Of a stretch of 64,000 nt of DNA, positions 1-31,885 are shown one piece after another. The stretch is from positions 186,001-250,000 of the IMG/VR virus record IMGVR_UViG_3300029983_000007; one strand, 5' to 3'. The notes under the pieces were generated by a model, which ran no database searches, was not told the origin of the DNA, and saw nothing but the letters and a program-made list of their open reading frames with translations. The translations under genes and the position numbers were made by a program. Numbering within the stretch: position 1 is the stretch's first letter; each line of letters opens with the position of its first letter.

Positions 1-46
1 ATTATTCATTATAGATATTATTGGTTTTTTACAATAATATAAATCA

Positions 47-346
47 TCAATCTTTGGATTCATTATCTAAATCACTTTTTAAATAATTAGCTAATCTTTG
101 AATTTTATATGCATCATCAGGATTAAAAATAAATTCATCAAATGCTCCATATTTGCACCTATATCCAAATATATATTTAACTCCGTGTTTTAATCTACTC
201 CAAAATGAACCTCTATTTAAAAGTACATGAGCATAGCACATTGGATAACTTTTACCAGTTTCATTTGTATCTTCATCATATAAGAACACAATTTGATGAT
301 CTGTTGAATGACAACTACAAATTAATATATCTTCTTTCTTTTTCAT
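47..346 (-). CDS. hypothetical phage protein
   Basis: 99-aa ORF with an N-terminal CSCH motif; no recognisable family. Confidence 0.6.
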   Translation of the reverse strand: MKKKEDILICSCHSTDHQIVFLYDEDTNETGKSYPMCYAHVLLNRGSFWSRLKHGVKYIFGYRCKYGAFDEFIFNPDDAYKIQRLANYLKSDLDNESKD

Positions 347-496
347 AATTTAATATTTTTTTTTAATAATTCTTCTAACTCGTTTATAGTATTTTCACAT
401 AATATAGTTTGTTCTCTTACTCTAAATCCTCTTGTCCACGAGTATTTTTTGTCTGTTAAATGTAATTGTTCTTTTCTTAATTCAATTAATCTATTT

Positions 497-1400
497 TCAA
501 TCAATTCTTCCATTATTTAATTTTTCTAATTTTCTTTTTCTATATCCTTGATGATCACTAAAATATTCAGAAAATAGATTGTTTTTTCTATCTGTTTCAA
601 GCCAAAATGCATACTTATCATCATCAGTATAATTTATTGATATTATAACTTCATCTGATTTGCTATCATTGTACATAGTTTTAGTAGCAGATTTTGTGTG
701 ATTAACAGTGTATATGTTATTTTCTTTGAATATTAATTTTTCATCAGATTTTCTATATACATCTTTTGTACAATAAACTTTATCTCCTGCGTTTAGTATT
801 TTTACTGACATTCTATAAATAATTTTTCTAATTTCATTTTTCTATATTCTTTTATGCTCATAAAATATTCATAATAATTCCATCCATATGCATTTTTTAG
901 ATTAAGAGTATAAAAAAACCCATTACTTTCAATTGAAACTAAACTTTCTATACCTTTCTGCTTATACACAAAATGAACAATGTATACATTGTTCATTTTC
1001 ATGACTAATGTATTATCAAAATCATAAAAATCATTTATGCAATAAACTTTATCTCCTTGCTTTGGTATTAACTTCATTGTTTCAATATATTTAATAATTT
1101 TCTTTTTCTTTTTTTACTAATCCATTTATTTCTATTAAAATCAAATACATTTTTTATAATATTGTCACTTGGATTATTTGTGACAGTTTTGCATTCTTTT
1201 AAATCAATCCAACAATGTGATATTCCATCTTCTGAAACATAACCATAAAAACCAGGTAGATAACAACGAGTATCATGATCTGGTATATCATATTCAGTAA
1301 TCAATTTAAATTCTTGAACCTTACCAATAGGTTCAACTGTTGAATTGAATGTAAAGTGAATAATATTACAATCTTTTATCCATTCTTCTATTTCTGTCAT
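497..1400 (-). CDS. three small overlapping ORFans with C-terminal RKxKL-type tail (497-811, 802-1077, 1074-1400)
   Basis: Overlapping stop/start junctions; tails GYRKRKLEKL, EYRKMKLEKL, KKRKRKLLNI; the first two start with GDKVYC like the 5.5-8.8 kb family. Confidence 0.75.
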
Positions 1401-1853: not shown

Positions 1854-3151
1854 TGGGTAAAAAATCAAAAAATGATGTTTTTATTAAAAAGGCAATAGAG
1901 GTACATGGTAATAAATATGACTATAGTTTAGTAGAATATAAACATAATCAAACAAATGTTGAAATTGTGTGTAATGATTGCGGATATAAGTTTCTAAGGA
2001 CTCCACATTATCATCTAAAAAGAAATATTAACAATGGTTGTAAAAATTGTTATTCATTAGCAAGAATATTAACTACTGATATCTTTATTGAAAAAGCAAT
2101 AGAGGTACATGGGAATAAATATGATTATTCTTTAGTTAAATATGAAAAATCGAAGACTAAAATTAAAATTATTTGTCCAATTCACGGAGAGTTTGAACAA
2201 ATACCGAATTCTCATTTATCTGGACATGGGTGCGACAAATGTGGAAGTTTTTCGACAACATATAATTTTATAATAACAGCAAAAGAAATTCATTGTGGTA
2301 AGTATGATTATTCTTTAGTTAATTATATAGATAATAAAACTAAAGTAAAAATTATTTGTCCAACTCATGGTATATTTGAACAAACTCCAGGTGGACATTT
2401 ATTTGGTAGAGGATGTGAAAAATGTGCATTTGATGGTAGAAGAATATTATTAGAAGATTTTATAAAAAGATCAAAAAAAATACATAATGATAAATACGAT
2501 TATTCTTTAGTTGAATATTGTTATTCAACGGAAAAAGTAAAAATTATTTGTCCAACTCATGGTATATTTGAACAAACTCCAAGTGGACATTTAGTAGGAA
2601 AAGGATGTTCAAAATGTAAATTTGATAAACATAGATTATCTACTGATGAATTTATAAAAAGATCAAAAAAAATACATGAAGATAAATATGATTATTCTTT
2701 AATTGATTATATAGATGTTCATAATAAAGTAAAAATTGTTTGTCCAACACATGGTATATTTGAACAAAAGGCAAATTCTCATTTACATAATCATGGATGT
2801 CCGTATTGTAATGAAAGCTTTGGAGAGAAAAAAATAAATAGTTTTTTAAAAAATAAAAAAATATCATACATCAGAGAATTCTCATTCGATGATTGTGTAG
2901 GTAAAAATAATGTTAAATTAAGATTTGATTTTTATCTTATTAAATATAATATTTGTATTGAATTTGATGGTAAACAACATTTTATTGCGCCTGAACAATG
3001 GGGAGGAGATGAATATTTATTACATTCTAAAAAATTAGATAAAATAAAAAATGAATATTGTAAAAATAACAATATTCATTTATTAAGGATAAAATATACA
3101 AAAATTAATTATATTGATATAATATTATCTAGACTTTTAAAACTTTTATAG
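1853..3151 (+). CDS. homing-type endonuclease with about six Zn-binding repeats and a C-terminal Vsr/PD-(D/E)xK-like domain
   Basis: Repeats HGNKYDYSLV-Y...KVKIICPTHGIFEQTP..HL.G.GC.KC; C-terminal RFDFYL..YNICIEFDGKQHF...DKIKNEYC. Confidence 0.8.
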   Translation: MGKKSKNDVFIKKAIEVHGNKYDYSLVEYKHNQTNVEIVCNDCGYKFLRTPHYHLKRNINNGCKNCYSLARILTTDIFIEKAIEVHGNKYDYSLVKYEKSKTKIKIICPIHGEFEQIPNSHLSGHGCDKCGSFSTTYNFIITAKEIHCGKYDYSLVNYIDNKTKVKIICPTHGIFEQTPGGHLFGRGCEKCAFDGRRILLEDFIKRSKKIHNDKYDYSLVEYCYSTEKVKIICPTHGIFEQTPSGHLVGKGCSKCKFDKHRLSTDEFIKRSKKIHEDKYDYSLIDYIDVHNKVKIVCPTHGIFEQKANSHLHNHGCPYCNESFGEKKINSFLKNKKISYIREFSFDDCVGKNNVKLRFDFYLIKYNICIEFDGKQHFIAPEQWGGDEYLLHSKKLDKIKNEYCKNNNIHLLRIKYTKINYIDIILSRLLKLL

Positions 3152-4763
3152 AATTAATAAAGTGATTAGGTAATATATTAGAATTATATTTCAATAAATC
3201 AGAAAAATTTGAATCTAATATGAAAGTTTGACAATAATCAGTTTCACTGCGAATTCCGCGGCCAACTTCTTGAATTGTGTTAACACAGGCATTCCAGGCA
3301 TACCATTCAGGCTTAATTTTTTGTCTAGCTTTAATTTTTTTAGAACCAAGATTTGCGAAACTAATTTTTAGCACTATTTGAAAACGAGCTAACTCATCGT
3401 CTAATGAAATTCCTTCCATCATTGATGGACTGACTAAAACTGTTGCAGTTGTGCTTGTTAAATGTTTTTCAAGTATTTCATTTCTATCTTCAGTTGTATG
3501 AAATAATAGTCTTTCGTCCATAATGGTTTCTTTTAACCATTCTGTTATTTCATAATTTGATGTGTGAATTATACCTTTTTTATCTTTATATTTTGCTAAT
3601 ATTTTTTTTATCCATGGTACTTGATTTTTGAATGTCTCTTCTTTACTATAAAAAGACATCTTACCAAGCTTCATATAAAATATTGGATGATTCTTCAATT
3701 CAAACGGAGATTCAACTTCATAATAGCTTGTTAAATCTTCATCCAGTCCATTAATGAAACCAAACATCTTAGGATCCAATATTGTTGCAGACATGAAAAT
3801 TATATGATCATATTTTGACCAAACATATTCATTAAGGTACTCATATACTAATATATGTTCAGTTACCAACTCTATCCCACTATAATTCTTTTCAGTTTTA
3901 GATTTATTGATATCAAGAACTACATTATCAGGATCATTTTTATATGACTCAAATAAATGTTTAAACGCCAACAATTTACTATCAATATTTTGTAAATATT
4001 TAGATAATTCAACTTTCTGTTTTTGTTTTGATGAACCAGCAATATCTGACTCAAATTGTGTTCTTTTTTTCTCTAACATTGGAATTAACTTTCTTTCTAA
4101 AAATTCTAAATATTTGTCTAAAAATTTAATTTTTGATATATATTTACTATCAATTTCATCAATTTCTTTTAAACCAAATCCGCATTTTTTTAATGTTTTT
4201 GAACTTAATTTTGATGATAAGTAGGATGAGAATGTTTCTTCGAAGGATTGACATTCATCAATTATAAGTACATTACCATCTCTTCGTTTTAGTGTTTCTG
4301 TTTGAAATAATGATAATGTGTCAAATAGATGAAAATTTGTTAAGCCAATATCTCCAGATATCCATGAATTTTTTGCAATATCATATGGACATGCATCACA
4401 ATGTTTTTTCATTATTGTACATAATTCTTTAGCTGTACCACAATCGCAATCAAAATCTTTACAATAATAGTTAGATTTGCCCTTGTAATTGTTAATAAAC
4501 GGAAAATCTTTTATGTACTGATCTTGAAGAATCTTAGAACCTGTCAAAACGTCGAATTTTGCATCAGTATTCACAAATCCCCTATACCAATTTGCAAACA
4601 TCATAACAAGAAACGATTTTCCTGTTCCAGTAGGTAAGTTGCTCAATATGAATCTTTTGCCATTAGTTATACTGTCTTTCATGAAGTTTAATGCCTCAAC
4701 TTGATACGTTTTTGGTTCATATTTCAGAGGGAAAAAAACTTTTTTATCGTCTACTTTAATCAT
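3129..4763 (-). CDS. DinG/Rad3-like SF2 DNA helicase
   Basis: Walker A LPTGTGKS, Walker B IIDECQ, SAT, Cys cluster C-x4-C..C..C...CPY, C-terminal QEVGRGIRSETD...ILDS. Confidence 0.85.
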   Translation of the reverse strand: MIKVDDKKVFFPLKYEPKTYQVEALNFMKDSITNGKRFILSNLPTGTGKSFLVMMFANWYRGFVNTDAKFDVLTGSKILQDQYIKDFPFINNYKGKSNYYCKDFDCDCGTAKELCTIMKKHCDACPYDIAKNSWISGDIGLTNFHLFDTLSLFQTETLKRRDGNVLIIDECQSFEETFSSYLSSKLSSKTLKKCGFGLKEIDEIDSKYISKIKFLDKYLEFLERKLIPMLEKKRTQFESDIAGSSKQKQKVELSKYLQNIDSKLLAFKHLFESYKNDPDNVVLDINKSKTEKNYSGIELVTEHILVYEYLNEYVWSKYDHIIFMSATILDPKMFGFINGLDEDLTSYYEVESPFELKNHPIFYMKLGKMSFYSKEETFKNQVPWIKKILAKYKDKKGIIHTSNYEITEWLKETIMDERLLFHTTEDRNEILEKHLTSTTATVLVSPSMMEGISLDDELARFQIVLKISFANLGSKKIKARQKIKPEWYAWNACVNTIQEVGRGIRSETDYCQTFILDSNFSDLLKYNSNILPNHFINSIKVLKV

Positions 4764-4968: not shown

Positions 4969-5452
4969 ATGAATGATAATAGATATTATTGTAAAAAAAA
5001 TTATTATAATAACTTCACAAAAGGATGTTATTATGATATTTGGATAGATCATAACAAGGATTCAAGTTATCTAATAAATTGGATAAATAATAATGTTTAT
5101 AATGTAAACACCATCTATGTTATATATGGATCTGAAATGGATAAAAATTTTAATAGCTATTTTATATTAGCTACTATTCATGATAGAAAAATAAAATTAA
5201 AAATATTAAATGAAGACTAAAAAATATTATTGTAAAAAATCATACGATAGCATTACTATAGGTAATTATTATGATTGTGGAACATCAACTAATGATTTAA
5301 TTTATGAAATTTCTGGAAAAAACAAAAAAGGTTTTGACTTTAATATGATATATGACAATAAATCTGATATTTATAAATATTTTAATGATTATTTAATATT
5401 AGCTATTATTCACGACAGAAAAATAAAACTAGAAAAAATTAGGTTATCTTAA
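4969..5452 (+). CDS. two paralogous small proteins with RKxKL-type tail (4969-5220, 5210-5452)
   Basis: Shared YYCKK...G.YYD...Y.ILA.IHDRKIKL. Confidence 0.75.
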
Positions 5453-5494
5453 TTTTTTTCATTATCTTAGTATTACAAAATATTAAATTTAAAA

Positions 5495-8400
5495 ATGGAT
5501 CAAAATATTAAAATAGGTGACAAATTTTTATGTAAAATGAATTATTGTTATATAATATTACAAAAATTTCATGAAGGTGTAGAATATGAAGTATATGATA
5601 TAAAAAAAATAGACAATGGCTGCGGTTTTTATTATTATTCCTATTCAATGATAGATAATGTTGACTTTAAGTTGTTATATGTGATTGAGTATGAATTAAA
5701 TAATATATTTTACTCTGGTAAAGAAATGAGAAAAATTAAATTAGAAAAATTGAATGAAAAATCATAATATTAAAATTGGTGATAAGTTATTATGTAAAGA
5801 TGATTGTTGGATTCCTAATATATGCTATCATAAAGGTAGAGAATATGAAGTATTTGATTTAAATAATTATTCGTACGTAATAATAGATAGAATTAACAAT
5901 GAGAGATTATTTATTGATGAATCAGAATTAAATTTAGTTTTTTATACTAATCAAGAAATGAGAAAAATTAAATTAGAAAAATTAAATGAAAAAATATAAT
6001 CTTAAAATAGGTGACATATTGTTATGTAAAAAAGATTATATTTATAGTAAAATCTCTTTTAGTATAAATAAAAAATATGAAATAATTCAAATTGTTTATA
6101 ACTCGCTTGAAAATAACAATAATTCGGTTTACTATTATGTATATGACGATAATAATAGTAGCATAGAAATTAGAAATGATGAAGATATGAATAGATATTT
6201 TTACACTAACCAAGAAGTCAGAAATATGAAATTAAAAAAAATTTATGAAGAATCAGAATCTTAATATTGGTGATAAATTATTATGTAAAAATTATTTAAA
6301 AACAGAATATTCTAGTTTAATAGAAGGTGATTATTATTTATTAGTTGATTTTGAGATATTTAATCATGAAGAATATTGTGATGTTAATTATACATTTTAT
6401 GATGAATATAATTATGATGATTATGTATATTATATAGATGATAATAATCATCACTCGTTTTCAATATTAGATGAAAAAGATTTATATAAGTATTTTTATA
6501 AAAAAAATGAGATTAGAAATATGAAATTAGAGAAATTAAAAAATGTTTAAGCAGAATCTTAAAATTGGTGATAAGTTGTTATGTAAGATAGATTATTGGA
6601 CAACAAAAATTTATTTTTTTGAAGGTAGAGAATATAATATATGTGACATAGAAATTGATTATGCAGATGAGAATGATTATGCATATTTTATAATGGATGA
6701 GAATAAAAACCGTGTGTTATTTATGATATTAGATGATTTAGATTCTTTTTTTTATACTAAGAAAGAAGTTAGAAATATCAAAATAAAAAAATTGAAAAAT
6801 GCATAATATTAAATTTAAAATAGGAGAAAGAATATTATGTAAATGCATTTTGCATCAAAACTTCGAATATTTTATGTTAAATAAATATTACACAATTTAT
6901 TCAATTGAAGTGTCAACCATAGGTAATTCATATTATCATATGACATTATAAAATAGCGATTTGCAGTCTATTTGTTCAGATGAATCTGTTTATAATTATT
7001 TTTATACTAACCAAGAAGTCAGGAATATGAAATTGAAAAAATTAAATGAAGAATCAAAATCTTAATAAAGGAGATAAAATATTATGTAAGAATGATATAC
7101 ATAATTCAAGAATTAATTTTACAAAAGGAATAGAATATTATATTGTAGCTATAGAACATAAAAATGATAATTATGATGATGATGGTAGTAATTATTACTA
7201 TTATATATCTGATGATAACTCTCAAATAATAGTTAGTGAAAATGAAAGATTATTTTATAATTATTTTTATACTAACCAAGAAGTCAGGAATATGAAATTA
7301 AAAAAAATAAATGATGATAAATAATTTTAAAGTTGGTGATAAGTTATTATGTAAAAAAGATTATATTACAAAATATTCAAGGTATAAAAAAAACAAATAT
7401 TATTATATTGAAGATATTGATGATCCTGTTTATGATTATGAAGAATATTCATATTATATAAATGATGATAATAATAATAATATTTATTTTTGGAAAGAAT
7501 ATGATTTATATGAATATTTTTATACTGCACAAGATGTACGAAAGCTTAAATTGAAAAATCTTTATGAAGAATCTGAATCTTAAAGTTGGTGACAAGTTAT
7601 TATGTAAAACTAACCTTTGTTCTTTGCTAGTTAATTACTTTAATAAGGATAAATATTATATTGTTTGGGATATTAAAAATTTTAAAGATTATTCTCAGAA
7701 TTGGACTTGGACTTGGTATTATATAATTGATGAAAGAGATTGTCCTTATTCTTTTAGTAAAATGGATGATGATTTATATGATATTTTTTATACTAAAAGT
7801 GAAATTAGAAAAATGAAATTGGAAAAATTGAAAAATGAAGAATATTAAAATAGGTGATAGATTATTATGTAAAAAAAGTCTATTTAACTCATCAATGACA
7901 TATTTTTATGCGAGAGAATATTACACTATTAATGAAATTCAATCAGAGAGTGATGGAGAATATTCATATTATATAATTGATAATAATGGCTATACTATGC
8001 CTTTTTCTTTTAATAATAACACTTTATATGCATATTTTTACACTAAACAAGAAATGAGACATATGAAATTAAAAAAAATTTATGAAGAAGCAGAATCTTA
8101 AAATAGGTGATAGATTATTATGTAAAGAAAGTTTTTTTGATTCAGATGATCCATATTTTCATGTAGATGATTATTGTATTATTTATTATATTCAAAAGTA
8201 TGTTACTAATGAATATTATTATTATATTTCAGATGAAAATAATAAACGATATCCTTTTAGATTTAGTCCTGATTTATTATTAACGTATTTTTATACTAAA
8301 CAAGAAATTAGAAATATGAAATTAAAAAAATTAGAAAAATATGAATAATTTTAATGACTATGATAACATATTATGTAAAAAAGATTTAATTGCTAATGGT

Positions 8401-8836
8401 CAGATATGTTTTATAAAAGATGAGTATTACATTTATCGTGAAAATTTAGGTAATGTTATTGATTTGTTTGGATGCTGTATTTATGGTGAAACTAGTGATA
8501 GATACCCATATTATTTAACTAAAAAAGATTTACTGGGTCATTTTTATACTAAAAATGAAATTAGAAAAATTAAATTGAATAAAATTTATGAAGAAGCAGA
8601 ATCTTAACACAGAAGATATATTATTGTGTAAAAAAGACTATTTAATATATTCTGTTGTTGTGTTTCATAAAAATAAATATTATTATAATAGATTTAATAA
8701 ATCTCATGTTTGTTGTACTATATGTGATGATGATTCATTTGAACATTTGCTTAGTTATGACGAGGTATCTGAGCATTTTTACACTAAACAAGAAGTTAGG
8801 AAAATTAAATTGAAAAAATTGAATGAATGTCAGTAA
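5495..8836 (+). repeat. tandem array of 13 paralogous ~81-101 aa genes (12 intact, 1 broken)
   Basis: Starts at 5495, 5754, 5986, 6245, 6543, 6799, 7046, 7311, 7564, 7835, 8082, 8341, 8588; N-terminal (K/N)(I/V)GD(K/R)(L/I)LCK is conserved (degenerate in the last two) and so is C-terminal FY(T/S/K)xxE/DxRxxKLxK[LI]; middles are divergent; successive genes overlap. Confidence 0.9.
6799..7065 (+). pseudogene. array member with an in-frame TAA at 6949-6951
   Basis: MHNIKFKIGERILCK...YYHMTL*NSDLQSICSDESVYNYFYTNQEVRNMKLKKLNEESKS*; both family ends are in one frame. Confidence 0.85.
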
Positions 8837-11210: not shown

Positions 11211-11907
11211 ATTTACAGAAAATACATCATTAGTACCAATTAATAATCAGTCATATATGAATTATTATATTCAAAAATGTCTTGGCGACAATAATAAATA
11301 TCATGATTCTAAGAATGATTATTCTATTTCTTCATTATATGGAGGTAAGTTAACAGATGATGAATTACATTTATCTTTCAAAAATGGAGGCATTATTGTT
11401 GTAACTTCAAAAAATGAAGAATTCTTGAATACTTTGATATGTGGTGTGATGTCTAATAAAGAATTAAAATGGGGAATGAAATTTGATAAAATTAATTTCA
11501 TTTCTGAAATTTTTAGAAATGGCTGGAATCATTTTGCTACATTATCTCCTTTTATTATTAAAAAATATATTGATAAAAAGAATTATACCTTTTCAACTTT
11601 GAATGATTCTGATTTTGTAGATACTGTAAAAAAACATATTATAAAAAAATTGAGTAAAATTTATAATGGTATAAATTTAACAGATTTTGATGTTAAAATA
11701 ATCAATCATCCTTCTCATAAAGTAAAAAAAATAATGGTGAAGAATGTTAAAAATGAAGCTAATCAATGTCAAGTCAGTATATTCTGTTCATCAGATGTAG
11801 CAGAAAAAATTTACAATTTAGGTATAGGTCAATCAACTGGTTCAGGATTTGGAACAATTTATAAAACAGAAAATAGAGATAAATATAATTTAGAATTGAA
11901 AAAATGA
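11194..11907 (+). CDS. cas6: CRISPR-associated endoribonuclease Cas6
   Basis: YHD..N.YSIS.L.GG, TLSPFII, C-terminal Gly-rich loop GIGQSTGSGFGTI. Confidence 0.95.
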   Translation: MRIIFEFTENTSLVPINNQSYMNYYIQKCLGDNNKYHDSKNDYSISSLYGGKLTDDELHLSFKNGGIIVVTSKNEEFLNTLICGVMSNKELKWGMKFDKINFISEIFRNGWNHFATLSPFIIKKYIDKKNYTFSTLNDSDFVDTVKKHIIKKLSKIYNGINLTDFDVKIINHPSHKVKKIMVKNVKNEANQCQVSIFCSSDVAEKIYNLGIGQSTGSGFGTIYKTENRDKYNLELKK

Positions 11908-11999
11908 TTAATTTTAATCTAAATGATATTGTTACAAGTGATTTTTTAAATTATAAATCACTTGTAATGTTATGTATATCTGTCAATTATGAATAATGA
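11908..11999 (+). promoter_or_regulatory. CRISPR leader with a 13-bp inverted repeat
   Basis: AT-rich non-coding stretch next to the first perfect repeat; TTACAAGTGATTT (11932-11944) / AAATCACTTGTAA (11955-11967). Confidence 0.65.
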
Positions 12000-13222
12000 A
12001 CTGATACTTATATAATTCCGCAAGGGAATCACAACAATGTGGAATGTAACTGGAATTAATGTTTTACTGATACTTATATAATTCCGCAAGGGAATCACAA
12101 CGAATATGCAGAATATTCAAAAAAGAGAATAACTGATACTTATATAATTCCGCAAGGGAATCACAACACAACAGATAATGGAAATAAATTACAAGTTACT
12201 GATACTTATATAATTCCGCAAGGGAATCACAACTCTAGCAGTGCAATAGAGCCAGCCCAATCAACTGATACTTATATAATTCCGCAAGGGAATCACAACT
12301 ATAAATAACAAAGAACTAATGAAAAACTCACTGATACTTATATAATTCCGCAAGGGAATCACAACTCAGCCTGAATTTTACCTTTACCCATCATTACTGA
12401 TACTTATATAATTCCGCAAGGGAATCACAACTAAAAATAACCATCTAATAATTGAGACATAACTGATACTTATATAATTCCGCAAGGGAATCACAACTGA
12501 TGTGATGATATACAGAAAAAAAAATAACTGATACTTATATAATTCCGCAAGGGAATCACAACATCATTCTATTGATTGTTATATTTCTTCTAACTGATAC
12601 TTATATAATTCCGCAAGGGAATCACAACATCTTTTCTATATAATATATTTTCATATTTACTGATACTTATATAATTCCGCAAGGGAATCACAACATCAAA
12701 AAATGTAATTCTATATTTATAATTACTGATACTTATATAATTCCGCAAGGGAATCACAACATATATTTTCTTTAAACTGCTCAATGATGAACTGATACTT
12801 ATATAATTCCGCAAGGGAATCACAACATTGCGTACGACTCATATAATTCAACACAAACTGATACTTATATAATTCCGCAAGGGAATCACAACAGCCCATA
12901 TGTACACCCTATTTAGTGGTACACTGATACTTATATAATTCCGCAAGGGAATCACAACTGCGCTTGAGTTGTTGAATTTGCTGCAAAAACTGATACTTAT
13001 ATAATTCCGCAAGGGAATCACAACTTTAATGCTTTTGCAAATTTTGGCATAATAACTGATACTTATATAATTCCGCAAGGGAATCACAACATTGCAGTTT
13101 GATACATTTCAAAATAAGAAACTGATACTTATATAATTCCTTGATGGAATCACAATATTGAAAAAATAGAAAAGTTGATACAATAAACTAATAATTATAT
13201 CATTCCGTAAAGGAATTTAAAA
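12000..13222 (+). CRISPR. CRISPR array: 17 identical plus 2 degenerate 36-nt repeats, 18 spacers
   Basis: Repeat ACTGATACTTATATAATTCCGCAAGGGAATCACAAC at 12000, 12066, 12132, 12198, 12264, 12330, 12396, 12462, 12527, 12593, 12659, 12725, 12791, 12857, 12923, 12989, 13055; degenerate copies at 13121 and 13187; spacers all different, 30 nt (one 29 nt); internal hairpin ATTCC-GCAAG-GGAAT. Confidence 0.99.
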
Positions 13223-13290: not shown

Positions 13291-15564
13291 ATGATAGAAA
13301 CATTAGTGTCTAATAGTAATGGAGTATCTTTAAAAACTCACTCGTTAGCTGTTCAAAAAATAGCAGTTATAATGGCTGAAAGATTAGGATTACCAATTGA
13401 TATACAAAATGCTATATCAAAAGCTGCTTTGTTACATGACATTGGAAAATCTTATATTCCTTTTCAAAATTATGTATCAAAAAAAGTTGTATCTGAAGAG
13501 TTTACTAATAATAAAATATTTCATCATGAAATTTCATGGGCTATACTTAGATATCTTATGAATATTGATAAAGATTATAATTATAGTATTTTATATTCTA
13601 TATATTGGCATCATTCCAGAGATATGAGTAATAAAAATAAAGAATATGCATCATCGATATTAGAAAAATTAACAGATGATGATAAACAAAGAGTATTAAC
13701 TGTGTATAATGAATTAACTGGTGAAAATAAAGTTTTATCAGATCTTGATGTTAATATCATGAATGATAAAATTCCTGATTATTATATAAATAAAGATGAT
13801 AAAATTTGTTCATTGAATATTATTGTTATGTCTTGTGTAGTTTCTTCAGATAGATATGTATCATCAATAAATATAGACCAGAATAAAATTTTAATTGATG
13901 ATAATTATTGTAATGAAATTGTTGATTCTATAGATTATTCTCCTACAAAAAATTATATAACACCAAAAAATTATGATATTGATCGTTTTAATTATCAATT
14001 ATCTTGTGCTGGTGATATAAATAGTAATCAAACTTCTGAATTGAAAGCACCTGCTGGTTATGGTAAAACTATTAATGGCTTACTTGCTTGGATTAAATCT
14101 GGGAATAGAAAATTAATTTGGGTTTGTCCAAGAAATACAATAGCGGAAACTCTATTTGATGGTGTTAAAAATGAACTTAATGCATTAAGTATCAATAATA
14201 TTAGTGTTGAATTGTTTCTTACTGGAGAAAGACGTGATATTTATAATGAAAACAATAATATAGATTTCACATCGGATATTATAATCACTAATATTGATAA
14301 TTTTTTGACTCCTACCATTAATAATTTTGTTAGAGATAGAATGTACTCATTATTATCAAGTTATGTTATTTTTGATGAATTTCATGAATTAGTTGCGTCT
14401 GAGCCGTACTTTGCTTGTTTTGTTAATATCATGAATGTTAGACATAGATATACAAATAGTAAAACATTACTGATGAGTGCGACCCCTACAATGATGACAA
14501 ATTTATGGGATAACTCAATTAAAGGAACTGCTATTTTACCAAATGAAACTAATCATTATAATGCTGCTCATTCTAAGAAATTTAGAATAAATTTCTTAGA
14601 TGATATAACTTTAGTAAATCCTCAACTAAATAGTTTATTTATAACAAATTCAATAAAATCTTCTCAAACAAAAACTATTGATGACGATTATTCAGTTATA
14701 GCGCATAGTAAATATATGATTGATGACAGAAAGTGTATAATTGATAGTATATTTGATATGTATGGTAAAAATAAGAAGATTCAAAATAAATTAGATGTTA
14801 TATCTGCGCCATTGATTCAAGCTGCTATGGATTTATCTTTTGGTATTATGACTGAAATTCCTAAATCTCCAGAAGATACATTTCAAAGATTGGGTAGACT
14901 TAATAGATGGGGAGAATATGATGTAGTTGATTATAATATTTTAGTTAATATTAATGATAAAAAAATAAATTTAAGTGAATTAGCTTCAATTAATCTTACT
15001 TATGACATAAAATTAAATAAATTGTGGATTGATTATTTAAAAAATAATATTATTGATAAATATGAATATACATTAGATGAATTGTACATTAAATACAATG
15101 TTTTTAATTCAATGTATAAAAAAGAAATAAATGAATATATTAATGATAGATACATTAAAAGTAGAGAATCATTATCTAAATTATTTCCAAGAAAATATAT
15201 AAATAAAGATACAAAAAAAATAGTATCATCAGGTTCTAAACTTAGGGACAATGGATCAAATAATATTTATTGTATATATAAAATATATAATACTGATGAG
15301 TATACAGATGTATTTAGTATTGATTCTAATGGTTCAGATATGGATAAACATGAAGATAATACTACTCAAACTAATCAGATTCGTTCTATTAAGAAATTGT
15401 TAACTGATAGTAGATTTGAATATAATAAACATAGATTATTAACAGGTAACAAATTTACTAGTAATAAATTATTTGAATCTGCAAAAAATCCTAAGACTCC
15501 ATATATTTGTTACCATAAAGAATATCATCCAAAATTAGGGCTTATATCAATTTATTTATTATAA
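13291..15564 (+). CDS. cas3: CRISPR-associated HD nuclease/SF2 helicase Cas3
   Basis: HD domain: LKTH, ALLHDIGK, HHEIS, WHHS, SSDR; helicase: APAGYGKT, DEFH, SAT, QAAMDLS, QRLGRLNRWG. Confidence 0.95.
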   Translation: MIETLVSNSNGVSLKTHSLAVQKIAVIMAERLGLPIDIQNAISKAALLHDIGKSYIPFQNYVSKKVVSEEFTNNKIFHHEISWAILRYLMNIDKDYNYSILYSIYWHHSRDMSNKNKEYASSILEKLTDDDKQRVLTVYNELTGENKVLSDLDVNIMNDKIPDYYINKDDKICSLNIIVMSCVVSSDRYVSSINIDQNKILIDDNYCNEIVDSIDYSPTKNYITPKNYDIDRFNYQLSCAGDINSNQTSELKAPAGYGKTINGLLAWIKSGNRKLIWVCPRNTIAETLFDGVKNELNALSINNISVELFLTGERRDIYNENNNIDFTSDIIITNIDNFLTPTINNFVRDRMYSLLSSYVIFDEFHELVASEPYFACFVNIMNVRHRYTNSKTLLMSATPTMMTNLWDNSIKGTAILPNETNHYNAAHSKKFRINFLDDITLVNPQLNSLFITNSIKSSQTKTIDDDYSVIAHSKYMIDDRKCIIDSIFDMYGKNKKIQNKLDVISAPLIQAAMDLSFGIMTEIPKSPEDTFQRLGRLNRWGEYDVVDYNILVNINDKKINLSELASINLTYDIKLNKLWIDYLKNNIIDKYEYTLDELYIKYNVFNSMYKKEINEYINDRYIKSRESLSKLFPRKYINKDTKKIVSSGSKLRDNGSNNIYCIYKIYNTDEYTDVFSIDSNGSDMDKHEDNTTQTNQIRSIKKLLTDSRFEYNKHRLLTGNKFTSNKLFESAKNPKTPYICYHKEYHPKLGLISIYLL

Positions 15565-15956: not shown

Positions 15957-17921
15957 ATGACAAAAAGTAATAATATCAATAATGTTAAACATCCCATTAT
16001 TAGAACAAAAAGTTTACGTAATGGTTCTGTAACAAAAAACAACAAGTCATATATAAGAACATATGATTTAAGTCGTTATAGTAATGATCAGTTAGTGAAT
16101 GCATTATATAGCAAAAAGTGGAACACAAACAGAAGAAGATTTATTGCTGATATATACTATTTATTAGATGAAAGGATTGCAGCAGGAAAATGTACTAAAT
16201 ATGAAATTGACAATTTGAAATATTTAGCTAATATAAAAAAGCATAATATAGTAAAATCTGTCAATAATAATAGTAGAACAACTACCACAAATACTACAAT
16301 TCCAGTCTCTAATAGTTTAGTTAGTTTAAAATATCGTATCAATAGTTTATCAAATGAAATATTTCGTATTACTGGTGCTAGATTTAAAAAGCTAAACAGG
16401 ACTGATGATGTATCAGATAAAGCACATGTATTTTATGATCAGATTTTTGCTTCATTACATTGTATACATAATATGTTGATGGCAAAAGATAATTATAAAC
16501 ATAGTAGATATAATATGTTAACTGCAGAAACTCAAGCAGGAAAAACAGGAGTTGTTCGTAATGTAATATTTTTATTGGAAACTTATCCTAAATTGAGAGA
16601 ATATCTTGGTTTAGAATTTGGAGGTAGCGTAATAATAACTCCAATGTGTGACAATGCAAATAAAGAACAATTAAAAACTGATATTTCACATGGCGAATGC
16701 AGACAAGACAATCAAAAACTTTTAAAGTCAAAAGGAATCATGCATAATCCAGATATGCTTAGTTGGTCAAGAAATAATCAATATGGAAACTTGCATGACT
16801 GTATTATATTTGTAGATGAATCTCACTTAGCATCAGGTGTTAGTGGTGCTATGAATAGTTATCTTCAAAAAAATAATATAAATTTGAATGGCTCTACTAA
16901 TTTATCTAAAAATAACATTTTTTTATTCACAATATCAGCTACTCCATATGAAGAGCATGTTGGTAATTTGTTATTTAAAAAAAAGAATACAATAGAGTTA
17001 GCTCATGGACCTAATTATAAAGGATTGGATTATTTTTTGAAAAACAATTTTTTTAGACAATCATTTGATTTGTCAACTACTGAAGGTGAGAATCATTTTA
17101 AGAATGAAGTAGAAAGTTTCAATCATAAAATTGGTTATTATATTGTCAGAATAAATATTAGTACAGATACTGATAATTTGATACCAGAAGGATTTTCAAC
17201 TTTAACATATTTTGAGAAAGATAAAGAAGTTATTAATGAAACATTGAGAAAAATACCTGATACACCTACTCTTATATTTGTAAAAGAGAAAATGAAACAA
17301 TCATATCAATTAGATAAACAAAATATTGTAATGATGTTTGATAGATCAGTTGTTCATGATTCTGATTATAGAACAAGTTTTATTGTACAAAGTTTTGCAG
17401 GTAGATTTTGTGGATATCATAATTATAATGCTATTATATACACAGAAATAAATGATGTGAAACTTCATTTAGATTATTTAAAAAATAAAAATCATGTACC
17501 ACACTGTAAGCGTGTTAATAATGATAAGAAATTTTCATTCAAGGAAAAAAATAAATCACAGCAGTCATCATATAGTAATAAAAATGACTTATCATATGCA
17601 AATAACTTTACATTAAAGATTGGATATAAAACACAGAATGATGGTTATATAACATTAAACAATAATATCATAACAATATATTTAGATAATAAGAGGAATT
17701 TAGTATTATCTAAAAAATCAAAAGTTGAAACAGAATTTCTTTCTTCTTATATTGAAGACTATGTTGTTTGCTCAGATATTAAAACACCTTGTAATTCATT
17801 TTTAGATGCTAAGAATGCACTTGAATCGTATTGTAAGATAGTATCATCAAAAACAAAAATTGATGATGTGAAAACAAAAAATGGTAAAAAATTCATTGAA
17901 TTATTGGAGTTTAATTTTTGA
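15957..17921 (+). CDS. SF2 helicase-like ATPase (DExH), reminiscent of Z1-domain/restriction-associated helicases
   Basis: AETQAGKTG, IFVDESH, ISATP, QSFAGRFCGY; basic N-terminal extension; promoter TTTG(15903)-N20-TACATTTG. Confidence 0.65.
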   Translation: MTKSNNINNVKHPIIRTKSLRNGSVTKNNKSYIRTYDLSRYSNDQLVNALYSKKWNTNRRRFIADIYYLLDERIAAGKCTKYEIDNLKYLANIKKHNIVKSVNNNSRTTTTNTTIPVSNSLVSLKYRINSLSNEIFRITGARFKKLNRTDDVSDKAHVFYDQIFASLHCIHNMLMAKDNYKHSRYNMLTAETQAGKTGVVRNVIFLLETYPKLREYLGLEFGGSVIITPMCDNANKEQLKTDISHGECRQDNQKLLKSKGIMHNPDMLSWSRNNQYGNLHDCIIFVDESHLASGVSGAMNSYLQKNNINLNGSTNLSKNNIFLFTISATPYEEHVGNLLFKKKNTIELAHGPNYKGLDYFLKNNFFRQSFDLSTTEGENHFKNEVESFNHKIGYYIVRINISTDTDNLIPEGFSTLTYFEKDKEVINETLRKIPDTPTLIFVKEKMKQSYQLDKQNIVMMFDRSVVHDSDYRTSFIVQSFAGRFCGYHNYNAIIYTEINDVKLHLDYLKNKNHVPHCKRVNNDKKFSFKEKNKSQQSSYSNKNDLSYANNFTLKIGYKTQNDGYITLNNNIITIYLDNKRNLVLSKKSKVETEFLSSYIEDYVVCSDIKTPCNSFLDAKNALESYCKIVSSKTKIDDVKTKNGKKFIELLEFNF

Positions 17922-20842: not shown

Positions 20843-22015
20843 TTATAGGTTAAATTTACTTGTATTTATTAAATAATCAAATTCTTTCTCTATTTTAGGA
20901 TTTAAAATGTCTTTAATATATTTTAAATTATCTATGTTGTCATCTAATATTGTTTTCTGATAGTCATATGATTTTAATATACTAATATCCATATGTCTTA
21001 ATTTTGATATGATAGATGGATATTGTTTCATTTTATTAATCCAAAAATCCTCATTGTAATTAGTTATGAATTCAGTAGTGAATGAATTTTCATATTTACC
21101 ATCATAATTACTTATAATCCAATATGCTAATTCTAAATACTTTGTACTTAAAATTTTACCATTTCTATAATACTTAAAAGGTAATCCTTGTATTATAGAA
21201 TAACCTTTATCTTTTACTTTATCAAGTATAACTCTTACAAATCTATCTAATTTTTCACTTATCATTAATGAAATCAAGTTATCTAATCTATATTGATATT
21301 TATCTTCTGAATGTGTAGCATATGAAGAAAATGAATAATCTTCCTCAATATTTTTAGAGTTAACTAAAAATGATACCGCATCTAAATTACCTTTATGAAT
21401 AACATTATAAATATGCCTATATGTTACTGGTACTCCTAAATTGATTAGATATTTTATAACATCAGGTTTGTCGTTGTATTTTGTTGCATAATCTATACAA
21501 TTTTCTGGTGCTCGTGAAAATGTAGCATCTTTCTTTTTATTCGGATCTAATCCTGTGCTAATTAAAAACTTAACAATATCTAATTTTCCTTTAAAACAAG
21601 CAGTCATTAATAAATCTTGATTGAAAGTTACTCCTAAATCTTTTAATAATTTGAATTTTTTGACATCTGAATTATGGTATACAAGATTATTTAAAAATTC
21701 TGGTTCTTTAATTAATGCTTTATAAATATTATCATTTTTTAATATAGATTTGAAATAAATATAAGGTAGTTCACAAACTGCTGTGTTATTTTTTGAAAAT
21801 TTTTTTGCTGGTACATAATCAACTAATTTGACTGCTAATTCTGGAAGCTCTCTACAAGCAAAATAGAATAATCTATCTTCTTCGTATTCTGTTATATTCT
21901 TTGTGTTGATAATATTTATATAATGATTAACATCAATAATAGATTTAAAATCTTCATAAAAGCTATAAAATACTGGCTTTGTCTTTTTCTCATATATTTT
22001 AAAATTTGTTATCAT
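20843..22015 (-). CDS. ankyrin-repeat protein with KFNL tail
   Basis: LMTACFKGKLDIVKFLISTGLDPN, CIDYA...VIKYLINLG, IHKGNLDAVSFLV; likely start MITNFKIYE at 22015; ends TSKFNL. Confidence 0.7.
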   Translation of the reverse strand: MITNFKIYEKKTKPVFYSFYEDFKSIIDVNHYINIINTKNITEYEEDRLFYFACRELPELAVKLVDYVPAKKFSKNNTAVCELPYIYFKSILKNDNIYKALIKEPEFLNNLVYHNSDVKKFKLLKDLGVTFNQDLLMTACFKGKLDIVKFLISTGLDPNKKKDATFSRAPENCIDYATKYNDKPDVIKYLINLGVPVTYRHIYNVIHKGNLDAVSFLVNSKNIEEDYSFSSYATHSEDKYQYRLDNLISLMISEKLDRFVRVILDKVKDKGYSIIQGLPFKYYRNGKILSTKYLELAYWIISNYDGKYENSFTTEFITNYNEDFWINKMKQYPSIISKLRHMDISILKSYDYQKTILDDNIDNLKYIKDILNPKIEKEFDYLINTSKFNL

Positions 22016-22037
22016 ATCATTATATATAAAAAACAAT

Positions 22038-23094
22038 TTAAAATTTTCTTTCGGTTTCCATTCTTTTCAATGTTTCATATGGTGTTTCTCCTTTTTTCAT
22101 TGTGTAGCTACATCCAGTTGTACCTCCTTTCCAGGTACCTTTTCTTTCACCTATATCATCACTAAATTCTATTTCAATGTCTTTCCTTATTAATCTAATA
22201 TACTTCAACCAAGTGAGCCATTTCCATCTCCATTCTCTTTCTTCTACTCTAATAGTTGCTAAACAATTTTGTTCTTCACCATATTTTGTTGTATATTTGT
22301 AAGTATATGTTTCAGAAAAAATAATATCTTTCCATTTTGGATGATTCCAAAACTCCATATTCCTTGATTTTCTTGTTTCACTAAGCCAAGTACCATCTTT
22401 GACTAGACAGCTTGTTCTTATCCATTCCCAATGCCAAGGTAGATAAAAAGATTTGTATGTATAACCATAATTTACACTAAATTGCTTATCAGAAAAAGAT
22501 ATACCATATGTTGGTGGAGTAGATTCATCATATAGATTCTTAGTGTATTTTATTTCTATTTTTGATTTTTTATCAGACAATGTTGATAATTTATCTTTTC
22601 TAATATCTTTAATACTTTTTTTTATTTTAATTTTTTTATAATGTCTCCATGGTAGATTTATAAACAATTTCCCCCATATAAAATATATTTGAAGATTTGG
22701 ACTTGGATCAAAATATCCTGCTATATGGTATTTTAAACTAAAACCACTCCAATCAGGAGTAAATTCAATATATTTATTTTTAAATGGTTTCAACTTCAAG
22801 TCTTGTTAATTTTATTATTCTTTTAACTAATATAATATTCTCTGGTAATTTTATGTTGTATAATTTTGTTAATGTGTCTTGTTTGAAATGAAATCCGTGA
22901 TCATAATCATATGCAATTTTTGCAAATTCGTCACCAGCATTCATCCAATCCATCCATTCAACTCCGCTATTATCTAAGCCATATGAAACACATTGTTTAT
23001 ATAGTTTCAATATTGCTGTTCTATTTTTTATAAATTTAGAGTAGTTGGTTTCTCTTTCGTCGTATTCCATGTTCATATTAGTATAAAATATCAA
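22038..23094 (-). CDS. two hypothetical proteins (22038-22799, 22780-23094)
   Basis: Overlapping ORFs of 253 and 104 aa; no family recognised. Confidence 0.6.
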
Positions 23095-28078: not shown

Positions 28079-29004
28079 GAAGTCGTCTTGACTTTTTGAG
28101 GAGGGAAACAATATTTAAAAGAAGGGAACGTTTTGTATGCGACAAAACAACAATAACATTCCCTTCATGGTGTACCAAGTACTTGACAAAGATACAATAA
28201 GAATTGAAATACTGCCTCATTTATCGGTAGCAAAAAGAGGTTTTAAGACCACAAGTTGTCTGATTGAAGTAGTAAATAGCATTTTATATAAGCTGAAAAC
28301 AGGCTGTCAATGGTATCTGTTGCCAGTAAGAAGTTTGTTCTCAGATGTAGTCTTAAGCCATAAAACCATTTTTGGTCATTTTCGCAAATGGTGTAAGAGT
28401 GGTGAGTGGGAATACTGTTGGACGAAAATACTGGAAAAATACAAGTCGTTCTTGGATTTATCTAGTGCCGACTTGGATGGTAGTCATGCCACAGCACTTC
28501 GCGGAGGCGAAGAAGTGGCTTATCAGGGTAGGAAGAAAAGGAAAACGACAAATTCTTTGTTTCTTTCTGACCGACAGGGTTTACCTTTAGCTTTATCAAA
28601 TCCAATTGCAGGTAACCATAATGATTTATATGCAATTGAGAAATCCTCAGAAGAACTATTTTCAACTTTAGGGGAGGCAAAGATTAGTACAGATGGTCTT
28701 TTTATTAATGCTGATTCTGGTTTTGATTCAAAAAACTTTCGATCGATTTGTGAAAAATGGGGAGTAATTCCCAATGTTGCTTTCAACTATCGCAATGGTG
28801 AAAACAAAGATGAGTATTTATTAGATGATTTACTTTACAAACAAAGATACGTCATTGAAAGAACAAATGCTTGGATGGACAGTTTCAGATCGCTGCTTAA
28901 TAGATTTGATTATACGGTTTCAAGCTGGAAAAGCTTCAATTACATAGCTTTTATGATTATATTATTCAAGAAAATTAAAACTAACAAAAAGTCAAGATGA
29001 CTTC
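28079..29004 (+). mobile_element. IS5-family insertion sequence, 926 bp
   Basis: 19-bp terminal inverted repeats GAAGTCGTCTTGACTTTTT / AAAAAGTCAAGATGACTTC (1 mismatch), 3-bp direct repeat ATT on both sides, GC content above the flanks. Confidence 0.92.
28137..29000 (+). CDS. tnp: IS5-family DDE transposase
   Basis: LYKLKTGCQWYLLP, FRKWCKSG, LDGSH, GNHND, ADSGFD, RYVIERTNAWM. Confidence 0.95.
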   Translation: MRQNNNNIPFMVYQVLDKDTIRIEILPHLSVAKRGFKTTSCLIEVVNSILYKLKTGCQWYLLPVRSLFSDVVLSHKTIFGHFRKWCKSGEWEYCWTKILEKYKSFLDLSSADLDGSHATALRGGEEVAYQGRKKRKTTNSLFLSDRQGLPLALSNPIAGNHNDLYAIEKSSEELFSTLGEAKISTDGLFINADSGFDSKNFRSICEKWGVIPNVAFNYRNGENKDEYLLDDLLYKQRYVIERTNAWMDSFRSLLNRFDYTVSSWKSFNYIAFMIILFKKIKTNKKSR

Positions 29005-31513: not shown

Positions 31514-31584
31514 TGCTCTATGTTGTAATGATAGCAATCAGGAATTTGGATCCTGCAGATTAGGTTTGAGTCCTAATAGAGCAA
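31514..31584 (+). tRNA. trnQ: tRNA-Gln(UUG), atypical
   Basis: Acceptor TGCTCTA/TAGAGCA, anticodon arm CAGGA-ATTTGGA-TCCTG, T arm TTAGG-TTTGAGT-CCTAA; A19/U56 compensatory pair; no encoded CCA. Confidence 0.8.
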
Positions 31585-31598
31585 CAACACAATGTCAC

Positions 31599-31683
31599 TG
31601 CCTTGTGATGGAATTGGTTAAACATGTCAGTCTTTGAAACTGATGCTCATATGAGCTTGTGGGTTCGAATCCCACTAAGGCGA
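31599..31683 (+). tRNA. class II-like (long variable arm) tRNA with Gln anticodon UUG
   Basis: Acceptor TGCCTTG/TAAGGCG, D loop AATTGGTTAAA, anticodon arm TCAGT-CTTTGAA-ACTGA, variable hairpin GCTC-ATAT-GAGC, T arm GTGGG-TTCGAAT-CCCAC. Confidence 0.85.
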
Positions 31684-31693
31684 CAAATTATAT

Positions 31694-31766
31694 TGTTCAT
31701 TAGCGCAATTGGTAGAGCGTCAGATTCTGGATCTGAAGGTTGAAAGTCCGAATCTTTCATGAATAA
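31694..31766 (+). tRNA. trnQ: tRNA-Gln(CUG)
   Basis: Acceptor TGTTCAT/ATGAATA, D arm GCGC-AATTGGTA-GAGC, anticodon arm TCAGA-TTCTGGA-TCTGA, T arm GAAAG-TCCGAAT-CTTTC. Confidence 0.8.
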
Positions 31767-31775
31767 CAAATACAT

Positions 31776-31847
31776 TCTCATATTGTATAACGGCTATTAC
31801 ATTTGTTTTTGGAACAAATAATCTAGGTTCAACTCCTAGTGTGAGAA
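31776..31847 (+). tRNA. trnQ: tRNA-Gln(UUG)
   Basis: Acceptor TCTCATA/TGTGAGA, anticodon arm TTTGT-TTTTGGA-ACAAA, T arm CTAGG-TTCAACT-CCTAG. Confidence 0.8.
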
Positions 31848-31885
31848 CAAAAAACTCTGAAATTTAAATTTCAGAGTTTTTTTTA
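31848..31885. terminator. bidirectional terminator after the tRNA cluster
   Basis: AAAAACTCTGAAATTT/AAATTTCAGAGTTTTT inverted repeat. Confidence 0.75.

Follow-up and report, generated by a model that had tools for sequence, protein, structure and literature searches.

A phage-encoded type I-F2-like CRISPR–Cas locus with a type II-C-style array and a possible host source of new spacers

We analysed a 64,000-nucleotide stretch (the window; positions 186001–250000) of the 330,208-bp viral contig IMGVR_UViG_3300029983_000007, which has ~23% G+C and carries a CRISPR array beside a compact set of class 1 cas genes. The locus is the interference half of a CRISPR–Cas system on a phage of ~330 kb: no adaptation genes were found near the arrays of its family, yet growth of these arrays at the leader end continues. 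The lack of spacer-writing genes, together with type II-C integration signals in the array and its leader, argues that Cas1–Cas2 is most likely borrowed from the host, and we consider it probable that a host type II-C Cas1–Cas2 writes the spacers of the phage in trans. We lean, somewhat more cautiously, towards a wider proposal in which a lineage of huge phages of Bacteroidota splits CRISPR immunity with its hosts. The phage would supply an I-F2-like Cascade, Cas3 and a chimeric adapter array, the host's type II-C Cas1–Cas2 (with or without Cas9) would write the spacers, and a type II-C repeat terminus would serve as the class 1 handle.

A class 1 effector module and its array

Four cas genes and the array lie on the same strand in the order cas7, cas5, cas6, array and cas3 (Table 1). 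The Cas7 protein matches the Cas7fv models of NCBIfam (E = 9e-31) and PADLOC (E = 7e-24), the profile of its family matches Cas7fv in the I-Fv Cascade structure (Protein Data Bank (PDB) code 5O6U, chain C; E = 1e-30), and its precomputed Pfam assignment is PF28157, Cas7fv-like. Because the NCBIfam score of 107 lies below the curated cutoff of 200, we regard it as a divergent member of Cas7fv. The product of the second gene has no sequence-family match in Pfam, NCBIfam, PADLOC or PDB searches. Its gene stands directly 3′ of cas7 in 25 loci, and the best PDB fold for its AlphaFold model (pLDDT 79) is the 336-residue chain F of 5O6U (E = 3.6e-5, prob 0.99, TM-score only 0.28), followed by Cas5 chains of types I-B and I-E. 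Given the low TM-score, this is moderate evidence for a Cas5fv-like protein, which would probably bind the 5′ handle and read the protospacer-adjacent motif (PAM).

Cas6 is of the I-B/III type (TIGR01877, E = 8e-21; Pfam Cas_Cas6_C; PADLOC Cas6b, E = 1e-35), has GSGFG as its C-terminal glycine-rich loop, and holds the A-run of the leader in its last codons. Cas3 is recognized by Pfam (HD, DEAD and Cas3-like_C_2), by TIGR01596 and TIGR01587, and by the PADLOC Cas3fv model (E = 1e-61). Its HD domain starts at residue 14, it has no Cas2 domain, and the motifs H17...HD49, GYGKT256 (Walker A) and DEFH362 are intact. Cas8, Cas11, Cas1, Cas2 and Cas4 were not found in the module; one open reading frame (ORF), o654 (15957–17921), was considered as a large subunit and rejected, being conserved only in the sister phage L012 and lacking a family match. 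These assignments indicate a minimal I-F2-like complex of a Cas7fv-like and a putative Cas5fv-like subunit, for which no large or small subunit was found, with an HD-helicase Cas3 encoded beside the array. A first-pass annotation, made from the sequence alone, had placed a class 1 effector next to the array, as the four genes bear out. A type I-B identity does not hold: Cas6 alone is I-B-like, Cas7 is of the fv type, and Cas8b, Cas1, Cas2 and Cas4 are missing from the module, leaving an I-F2-like effector with an I-B-type Cas6.

In our own parse of the array, 17 of the 19 repeats are the identical 36-mer ACTGATACTTATATAATTCCGCAAGGGAATCACAAC, repeat 18 carries 5 mismatches and repeat 19 carries 9; 17 of the 18 spacers are 30 nt long and one is 29 nt (12498–12526), exactly the geometry that had first been read from the sequence. 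One 21-mer taken from the repeat is present in 17 copies, where 100 shuffles gave an expectation of 0.00, and TRF and a second repeat finder also give the 66-nt period. The reverse complement of the repeat starts GTTGTGATTCCCTT, and the degenerate repeats, at the 3′ end of the plus strand (13222), are at the 5′ end in this GTTGT orientation, again in agreement with the earlier reading. Spacer for spacer, the same array is present in independent Joint Genome Institute (JGI) assemblies of other samples (L003 and L005); three-repeat arrays in the Logan contigs L006 and L007, probably products of assembly collapse, were left out. A promoter scan of leader and array gave nothing above shuffles, and no terminator was found there; nor does the window outside the array hold a second copy of the GTTGT half of the repeat, as an anti-repeat would, at ≤3 mismatches.

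The family has 17 distinct repeats, all of 36 nt, and their alignment shows an invariant tail, AAUCACAAC (A28-A-U-C-A-C-A-A-C36), a variable 5′ half and a 5-bp hairpin formed by positions 16–20 and 26–30. Pair 19–27 changes on both sides (CG, UA, AU), and pair 20–26 is CG in 11 of the 17 repeats and UG in the other 6, which become A–C mismatches on the minus strand. Paired cells amount to 84.7% on the plus strand versus 75.3% on the minus strand, with full pairing on the plus strand only. From the covariation and from the U–G pairs, which work on the plus strand only, we take this to be the RNA strand. These patterns strongly indicate transcription of the array on the plus strand from the leader next to cas6, and recognition of the short conserved hairpin by the I-B-type Cas6. 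The 8-nt tail AUCACAAC begins right after the invariant closing pair U18–A28, the usual position of Cas6 cleavage, and is the predicted product of a Cas6 cut at this point.

Resemblance to type II-C arrays and leaders

The module recurs at 42 IMG/VR loci, mostly on contigs of 100–600 kb. Cas7 has 86 homologous clusters, nearly all of them metagenomic, and the only non-viral contigs with the system are two from metagenome-assembled genomes, both of Bacteroidota. Across 26 distinct loci, Cas3, Cas7, Cas5x and Cas6 are the only widely common families; the next largest are a set of tandem paralogs specific to L012 and a transposase-like/zinc-finger ORF (6 of the 26 loci). The 229 unique spacers of the family comprise 196 of 30 nt, 25 of 29 nt, 7 of 31 nt and 1 of 28 nt, and, read on the cas strand, decay is always confined to repeats at the downstream end, those next to the leader being clean.

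The same effector occurs in the most distant relatives (L047, L048, L051 and L052), which have Cas6e- or type IV-like Cas6 proteins, 28–32-nt repeats that end in AUUGAAA(G) and 32–35-nt spacers, and L047 and L048 have no leader between cas6 and the array. Given this different geometry beside the same effector, the Cas7fv complex does not dictate the 36/30 architecture. In the Cas7 tree, whose resolution is too weak to tell a single origin of the 36/30 array from several, L045 falls with the other group on a long branch. In L045 (12122–12760), a duplicated 15-nt tail (TAAGGTAATCACAAC) follows each 36-nt repeat and makes 51-nt units with ~29-nt spacers.

For comparison, we scanned metagenomes for two GTTGTGATT units 65–67 nt apart, leaving out repeats with C11, an invariant base of the phage family. 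This gave 120 loci, among which there are 40 different 36-nt GTTGTGATT repeats. Type II cas genes (cas9, cas1 and/or cas2) are present in 23 of the 27 loci of at least 3 kb, and phage cas genes in none of these 27; the encoded proteins include Cas9 of 1225–1395 amino acids (PDB match, E = 4e-42), type II Cas1 (4e-37) and Cas2 (1e-13). Spacers of 30 nt prevail here too (452, then 97 of 29 nt, 14 of 28 nt and 10 of 31 nt), where the phage order is 30, 29, 31.

Because this set was chosen by its GTTGTGATT terminus and its period, only the remaining shared features are independent. Among the repeat positions that the scan did not impose, T26, A32, C33, A34 and Y36 agree in both sets, so that the leader-proximal terminus is ACA-N-Y in each; A34 is found in 17 of 17 phage repeats and 39 of 40 type II repeats. 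Position 11 is C in all phage repeats and G in all 40 type II repeats. A Bergeyella Cas13b repeat ending in ...GGGTAATCACAAC was not counted as evidence. A type II repeat of Prevotella intermedia ends in ...CTAATCACAAC (PMC5608340). In the type II loci the decayed repeat lies at the 5′ end in the GTTGT orientation and the leader beside cas2, which is the polarity of the phage array and the growth direction that the first-pass annotation had given for type II-C.

The leaders also correspond. Of 17 leaders in each set, 11 phage and 11 type II leaders have a T-run (≥5) at −58 to −53 (background 5.4%), and 12 phage and 10 type II leaders have an A-run (≥5) that overlaps −101 to −96 (background 5.5%); the two base profiles correlate best when unshifted (z 3.1). 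Both tracts recur at like distances, in non-coding DNA, in type II loci with 47-nt repeats (L172 and L190/L216), with the A-run at −104 to −99 in L172 and L190. In L206, which has a 48-nt repeat, the T tract is at −60 to −55 and the A-run at −85 to −80, so the T tract alone matches. The 13-bp inverted repeat in the window's leader reads TTACAAGTGATTT / AAATCACTTGTAA; the T tract starts within its upstream arm and continues into its loop. In most leaders of the family another hairpin stands between T tract and array.

In repeat length, spacer spectrum, leader-distal GTTGTGATT, leader-proximal ACA-N-Y, polarity and leader tracts, the array matches cas9–cas1–cas2 loci, and its initial description as type II-C-style stands. 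Individual type II-C loci (L062, L063, L079 and L125) share repeat length, spacer spectrum, both termini, polarity and tract positions with the phage. Unlike the phage, for which none of these genes was found, they have cas9–cas1–cas2; no anti-repeat at ≤3 mismatches was found in the phage window, the phage repeat has a Cas6-hairpin interior with C11 in place of G11, and its array is transcribed from the leader side. We infer that the repeat is a chimera of type II-C-like termini and a Cas6 hairpin in the middle, its leader-distal terminus doubling as the CRISPR RNA (crRNA) handle. A hybrid repeat with separate integrase ends and Cas6 handle had been suggested; the type II-C-like termini and the covarying hairpin with its 8-nt tail support this, whereas the separation fails, the integrase end and the handle being the same nucleotides.

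Source of the spacers

No ORF in the window matches Cas1, Cas2 or Cas4 in Pfam, PADLOC or NCBIfam; the Pfam list for 73 window ORFs is complete at 17 families, and the other ORFs were covered by the further library scans. In 21 distinct related loci, the DNA up to 10 kb from the array yielded none of the three among the families listed, which for several flanks are the best 25, where a true Cas1 would rank high. Hidden Markov models trained on type II Cas1 and Cas2 sequences from this analysis reach best E values of only 0.31 and 0.13, respectively, against 916 kb of six-frame phage sequence, and an IMG/VR-wide scan for type II Cas1 motifs gave 42 loci, none on family contigs. The supposition that the phage lacks cas1, cas2 and cas4 has thus been sustained for the window, for the flanks of the 21 loci and, as regards a type II-like Cas1 motif, for the family contigs. 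The arrays nevertheless gain spacers: L042 and L043, two sister phages that have the same repeat, hold their trailer-side spacers in common and three private leader-side spacers each. Acquisition is therefore polarized and recent at the cas6-proximal end, and ongoing.

A precedent for adaptation in trans exists in Flavobacterium columnare, in which type VI-B acquires spacers by means of the type II-C Cas1–Cas2, as the first-pass annotation had noted. Both types of repeat measure 36 bp there and have GTTGT leader-distally, and spacers lie with their PAM end towards the leader; in other species, II-C repeats exceed those of VI-B by ~11 bp (PMC8092290).

In the mechanism we propose for the phage, the host type II-C Cas1–Cas2 would integrate spacers into replicating phage DNA, with Cas9 perhaps choosing the PAM. 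The integration signals on offer would be the 36-nt repeat length, the leader-distal GTTGTGATT, the leader-proximal ACA-N-Y, the T tract at about −55 and the A tract at about −100. Cas6 would cut 8 nt before each spacer, yielding a crRNA with the 5′ handle AUCACAAC, a 30-nt guide and a 3′ hairpin; the guide would span five 6-nt Cas7 segments, and the Cas5–Cas7(×5)–Cas6 complex would recruit Cas3. By the II-C rule the PAM end of each spacer faces the leader. With transcription coming from the leader, this would place the Cas9 PAM 5′ of the protospacer, on the side that a type I complex inspects, though displaced by an N-stretch of 4–5 nt.

The host is probably a member of Bacteroidota, judging by an IS5 transposase gene in the window whose closest relatives are Bacteroides ISBf6 (60% identity) and then other Bacteroidota elements. 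This gene sits in a GC-richer island (~30% versus 23%), has its best matches on Bacteroides plasmids and may be read as a marker of the host phylum. One sample, 3300029998, holds both the phage (L003) and a type II-like cas1–cas2–array locus, on a contig of 37–38% G+C with Bacteroidota-type genes. The array of this locus has 47-nt repeats (GTTGTTTATCAAG...GCAAATCACAAC) and 30-nt spacers, with up to 17 repeats in sister samples. Its repeat termini are GTTGTTTATC...AAATCACAAC; 9 nt (TGTTTATCA) are identical to the phage-family repeat of L036 leader-proximally, and AATCACAAC matches distally. Its 16 spacers have no match in the phage sequence examined, and one AT-rich spacer has none in IMG/VR. 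A role of this locus as donor for the phage is circumstantial, because no cas9 was found in its examined flanks and no spacer matches phage DNA. Bacterial type II-like cas1–cas2 genes with a 47-nt-repeat array, an AraC-like gene upstream and no cas9 in the examined flanks (L190 and L215–L220) occur in the sample series of the phage and may be an orphan adaptation module.

Several observations weigh against borrowing from a type II-C host. The A and T tracts of the 36-nt II-C loci fall inside the 3′ cas2 coding sequence, the T tract is missing from 6 of the 17 phage leaders, and the II-C comparison set was itself selected for GTTGTGATT and the 65–67-nt period. The conserved tail could be explained by handle binding in Cascade alone. 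The co-occurring cas1–cas2 locus has 47-nt repeats and, in the flanks examined, no cas9. No protospacer was found for the 229 family spacers in the 0.9 Mb of sequence gathered here; searches of four arrays against GenBank phages gave only chance-level matches (E at least 0.04), and four window spacers, searched as exact 24-mers in IMG/VR, matched only themselves. A type I complex needs an adjacent PAM, and II-C PAMs are spaced from the protospacer by 4–5 nt. As to the missing genes, the full family libraries were applied to 64 kb of the 330-kb genome (a fifth), a weak Cas2 match could rank below the best 25 families of a flank, and the whole-contig scan covers Cas1 proteins with two type II motifs.

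These last points bear on the possibility that the phage has its own adaptation module outside the window, type II-like or with another Cas1–Cas2, which would account for the II-C-like array. Only 64 of ~330 kb were screened with profile libraries, and other huge viral contigs (L206–L212; 139–217 kb) encode a type II-like Cas1 beside arrays of 48-nt repeats with 30-nt spacers or of 36-nt repeats with 28-nt spacers; adaptation genes are thus part of some huge-phage genomes. We nonetheless hold such a module to be unlikely here, as none of the Cas1 motif loci lies on the window's contig or on family contigs, many of them 200–600 kb long, no adaptation gene was listed within 10 kb of the arrays of the 21 loci, and nearly all huge-phage CRISPR systems lack Cas1, Cas2 and Cas4 (Al-Shayeb 2020, PMC7162821).

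The II-C likeness might instead be a coincidence or a relic, with the 36/30 geometry and the ...CACAAC tail intrinsic to the Cas6/Cascade lineage as a diverged AUUGAAAC-type handle, and with spacers arriving by an unrelated or unknown route. In favour of this, type I repeats are normally best conserved in their 8-nt handle, AUCACAAC agrees with the classical AUUGAAAC in 5 of 8 positions, and the repeats of the more distant relatives end in AUUGAAA(G). Cascade, however, sets neither repeat length nor spacer spectrum, neither the leader-proximal end nor the tract positions, all of which match type II, and the distant relatives with the same effector have 28-/32-nt repeats, 32–35-nt spacers and no such leader; we rate this explanation as quite improbable.

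That the array is frozen, captured once from a host class 2 locus and in no need of an integrase, accords with its identity in all full assemblies from several samples; the private leader-side spacers of L042 and L043, the 229 unique spacers across lineages and the restriction of repeat decay to the trailer end make it very improbable. We give hardly any credence to an array that feeds host Cas9 or Cas13b, or acts as a decoy, instead of guiding the phage complex: although it has the repeat termini and geometry of II-C and VI-B arrays (PMC8092290), it lies between co-oriented cas6 and cas3, its hairpin covaries and has wobble pairs that work on the cas strand only, the window holds no anti-repeat at ≤3 mismatches, and C11 sets its repeats apart from all 40 type II repeats.

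Genomic setting and wider meaning

The window encodes a gp32-like single-stranded DNA-binding protein and the anti-CBASS protein Acb3 (CBASS, cyclic-oligonucleotide-based antiphage signalling system), and related loci encode a T4-type major capsid protein, IF3 and Thg1; we therefore assign the contig to a huge phage. The exact Cas7fv-like protein is also listed on a contig of 711,471 bp, alongside IMG/VR and JGI contigs of 330 and 326 kb, so the phage genome may be larger than 330 kb or the 711,471-bp assembly chimeric. Directly upstream of the cas operon are 14 tandem paralogous ORFs of 80–101 codons with the common motif GDKLLCK...YF-YT..E.R..KLKKL and no family match; L012 has 15 copies. 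A DinG/YoaA-like helicase beyond them aligns, along its full length, with the type IV-A-associated DinG model of PADLOC (E = 7e-57). Its tie to the CRISPR module is unproven, because the gene is kept in L012 (88% identity) and not in the other family loci. Acb3 (Pfam, E = 9e-48) adjoins an ankyrin-repeat protein in what looks like a counter-defence cluster, and four tandem tRNA-Gln genes lie further downstream. In the closest relative, L009, a TnpB/Cas12f-like OrfB_IS605 gene (1–1216, minus strand) lies 8 kb upstream of the cas module.

Table 1. Features of the window (coordinates are window positions)
Feature	Position	Strand	Details
DinG/YoaA-like helicase	3129–4763	−	PADLOC type IV-A-associated DinG model
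Tandem paralogous ORFs (14)	4969–8836	+	80–101 aa each
cas7fv-like backbone subunit, 361 aa	9238–10323	+	NCBIfam, PADLOC, PDB, Pfam
cas5fv-like subunit, 291 aa	10335–11210	+	AlphaFold fold match; conserved place after cas7
cas6, I-B/III-type endoribonuclease, 237 aa	11194–11907	+	TIGR01877, Pfam, PADLOC
A6 tract	11899–11904	+	−101 to −96 from first repeat
Leader, 92 nt	11908–11999	+	T6 tract 11942–11947 (−58 to −53); inverted repeat 11932–11944 / 11955–11967
CRISPR array	12000–13222	+	19 × 36-nt repeats, 18 spacers; newest end 12000, degenerate end 13222
cas3, 757 aa, N-terminal HD nuclease and superfamily 2 helicase	13291–15564	+	Pfam, TIGR01596, TIGR01587, PADLOC
Ankyrin-repeat protein	20843–22036	−	Adjoins Acb3; pair spans 20843–22799
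Acb3 anti-CBASS protein	22038–22799	−	Pfam
IS5 transposase	28137–29000	+	Closest to Bacteroides ISBf6
tRNA-Gln genes (4)	31514–31848	+	Three with anticodon UUG (one 86 nt long), one with CUG

The nearest described effector is the I-F2 (I-Fv) system of Shewanella putrefaciens CN-32 (PDB 5O6U; PMC4937334, PMC12956352). Like the phage system, it has a Cas7fv-type backbone and the gene order cas7–cas5–cas6–array; its Cas5fv subunit has a probable counterpart in the phage, and Cas8 and Cas11, which it lacks, were not found in the phage module; the phage Cas3 best matches the Cas3fv model. I-F2, however, has Cas6f, Cas1 and a Cas2–3 fusion, whereas the phage has a Cas6 of the I-B/III type, a Cas3 without a Cas2 domain and no Cas1 found in the window. 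The I-F2 array has 28-nt repeats and 32-nt spacers, and that of the phage is 36/30 with the handle AUCACAAC and is phage-borne.

The closest parallel in adaptation is type VI-B of F. columnare (Hoikkala 2021, PMC8092290), which likewise combines 36/30 geometry, a leader-distal GTTGT and poly(A) and poly(T) tracts at set places in the leader with transcription from that side, and gains spacers despite having no adaptation genes of its own. Its effector is Cas13b, whereas that of the phage is a class 1 DNA-targeting Cascade with Cas3, for which use of an integrase in trans is proposed here from sequence. Because the array is on a phage genome, unlike that of VI-B, the integrase would come from another genome. 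Plasmid-borne type IV-A3, as cited in PMC8092290, is also a mobile-element system without adaptation genes and shares leader, repeat and PAM with the I-E system of its host; it stays within class 1, whereas the phage case would cross classes, on a lytic-type phage. The type I-F system of phage ICP1 (PMC10161043) is phage-encoded and compact, but brings its own Cas1 and Cas2/3. CRISPR systems of huge phages are compact and mostly lack Cas1, Cas2 and Cas4, and for those with host-like repeats a loan of Cas proteins from the host has been suggested (PMC7162821). That idea concerned phages without effectors and with host-like repeats, whereas the present phage joins a complete class 1 effector to class 2 integration signals.

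Phage CRISPR systems without adaptation genes and adaptation in trans are thus both already known. The apparent novelty lies in the pairing of a class 1 effector with an array and leader of class 2 style, throughout a phage lineage, and in a type II-C terminus that doubles as the crRNA handle. If the proposal is correct, this would be the first class 1 effector on arrays built for a class 2 integrase, and the first virus to rely on the adaptation machinery of its host to arm itself. It would explain how many huge-phage CRISPR systems without Cas1–Cas2 continue to gain spacers, and would define the parts of a II-C repeat and leader that integration needs: both termini, the length, and tracts near −55 and −100. 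The system also offers a compact three-protein Cascade with a 30-nt guide, and its arrays, as natural chimeric substrates, make recognition by II-C Cas1–Cas2 directly testable.

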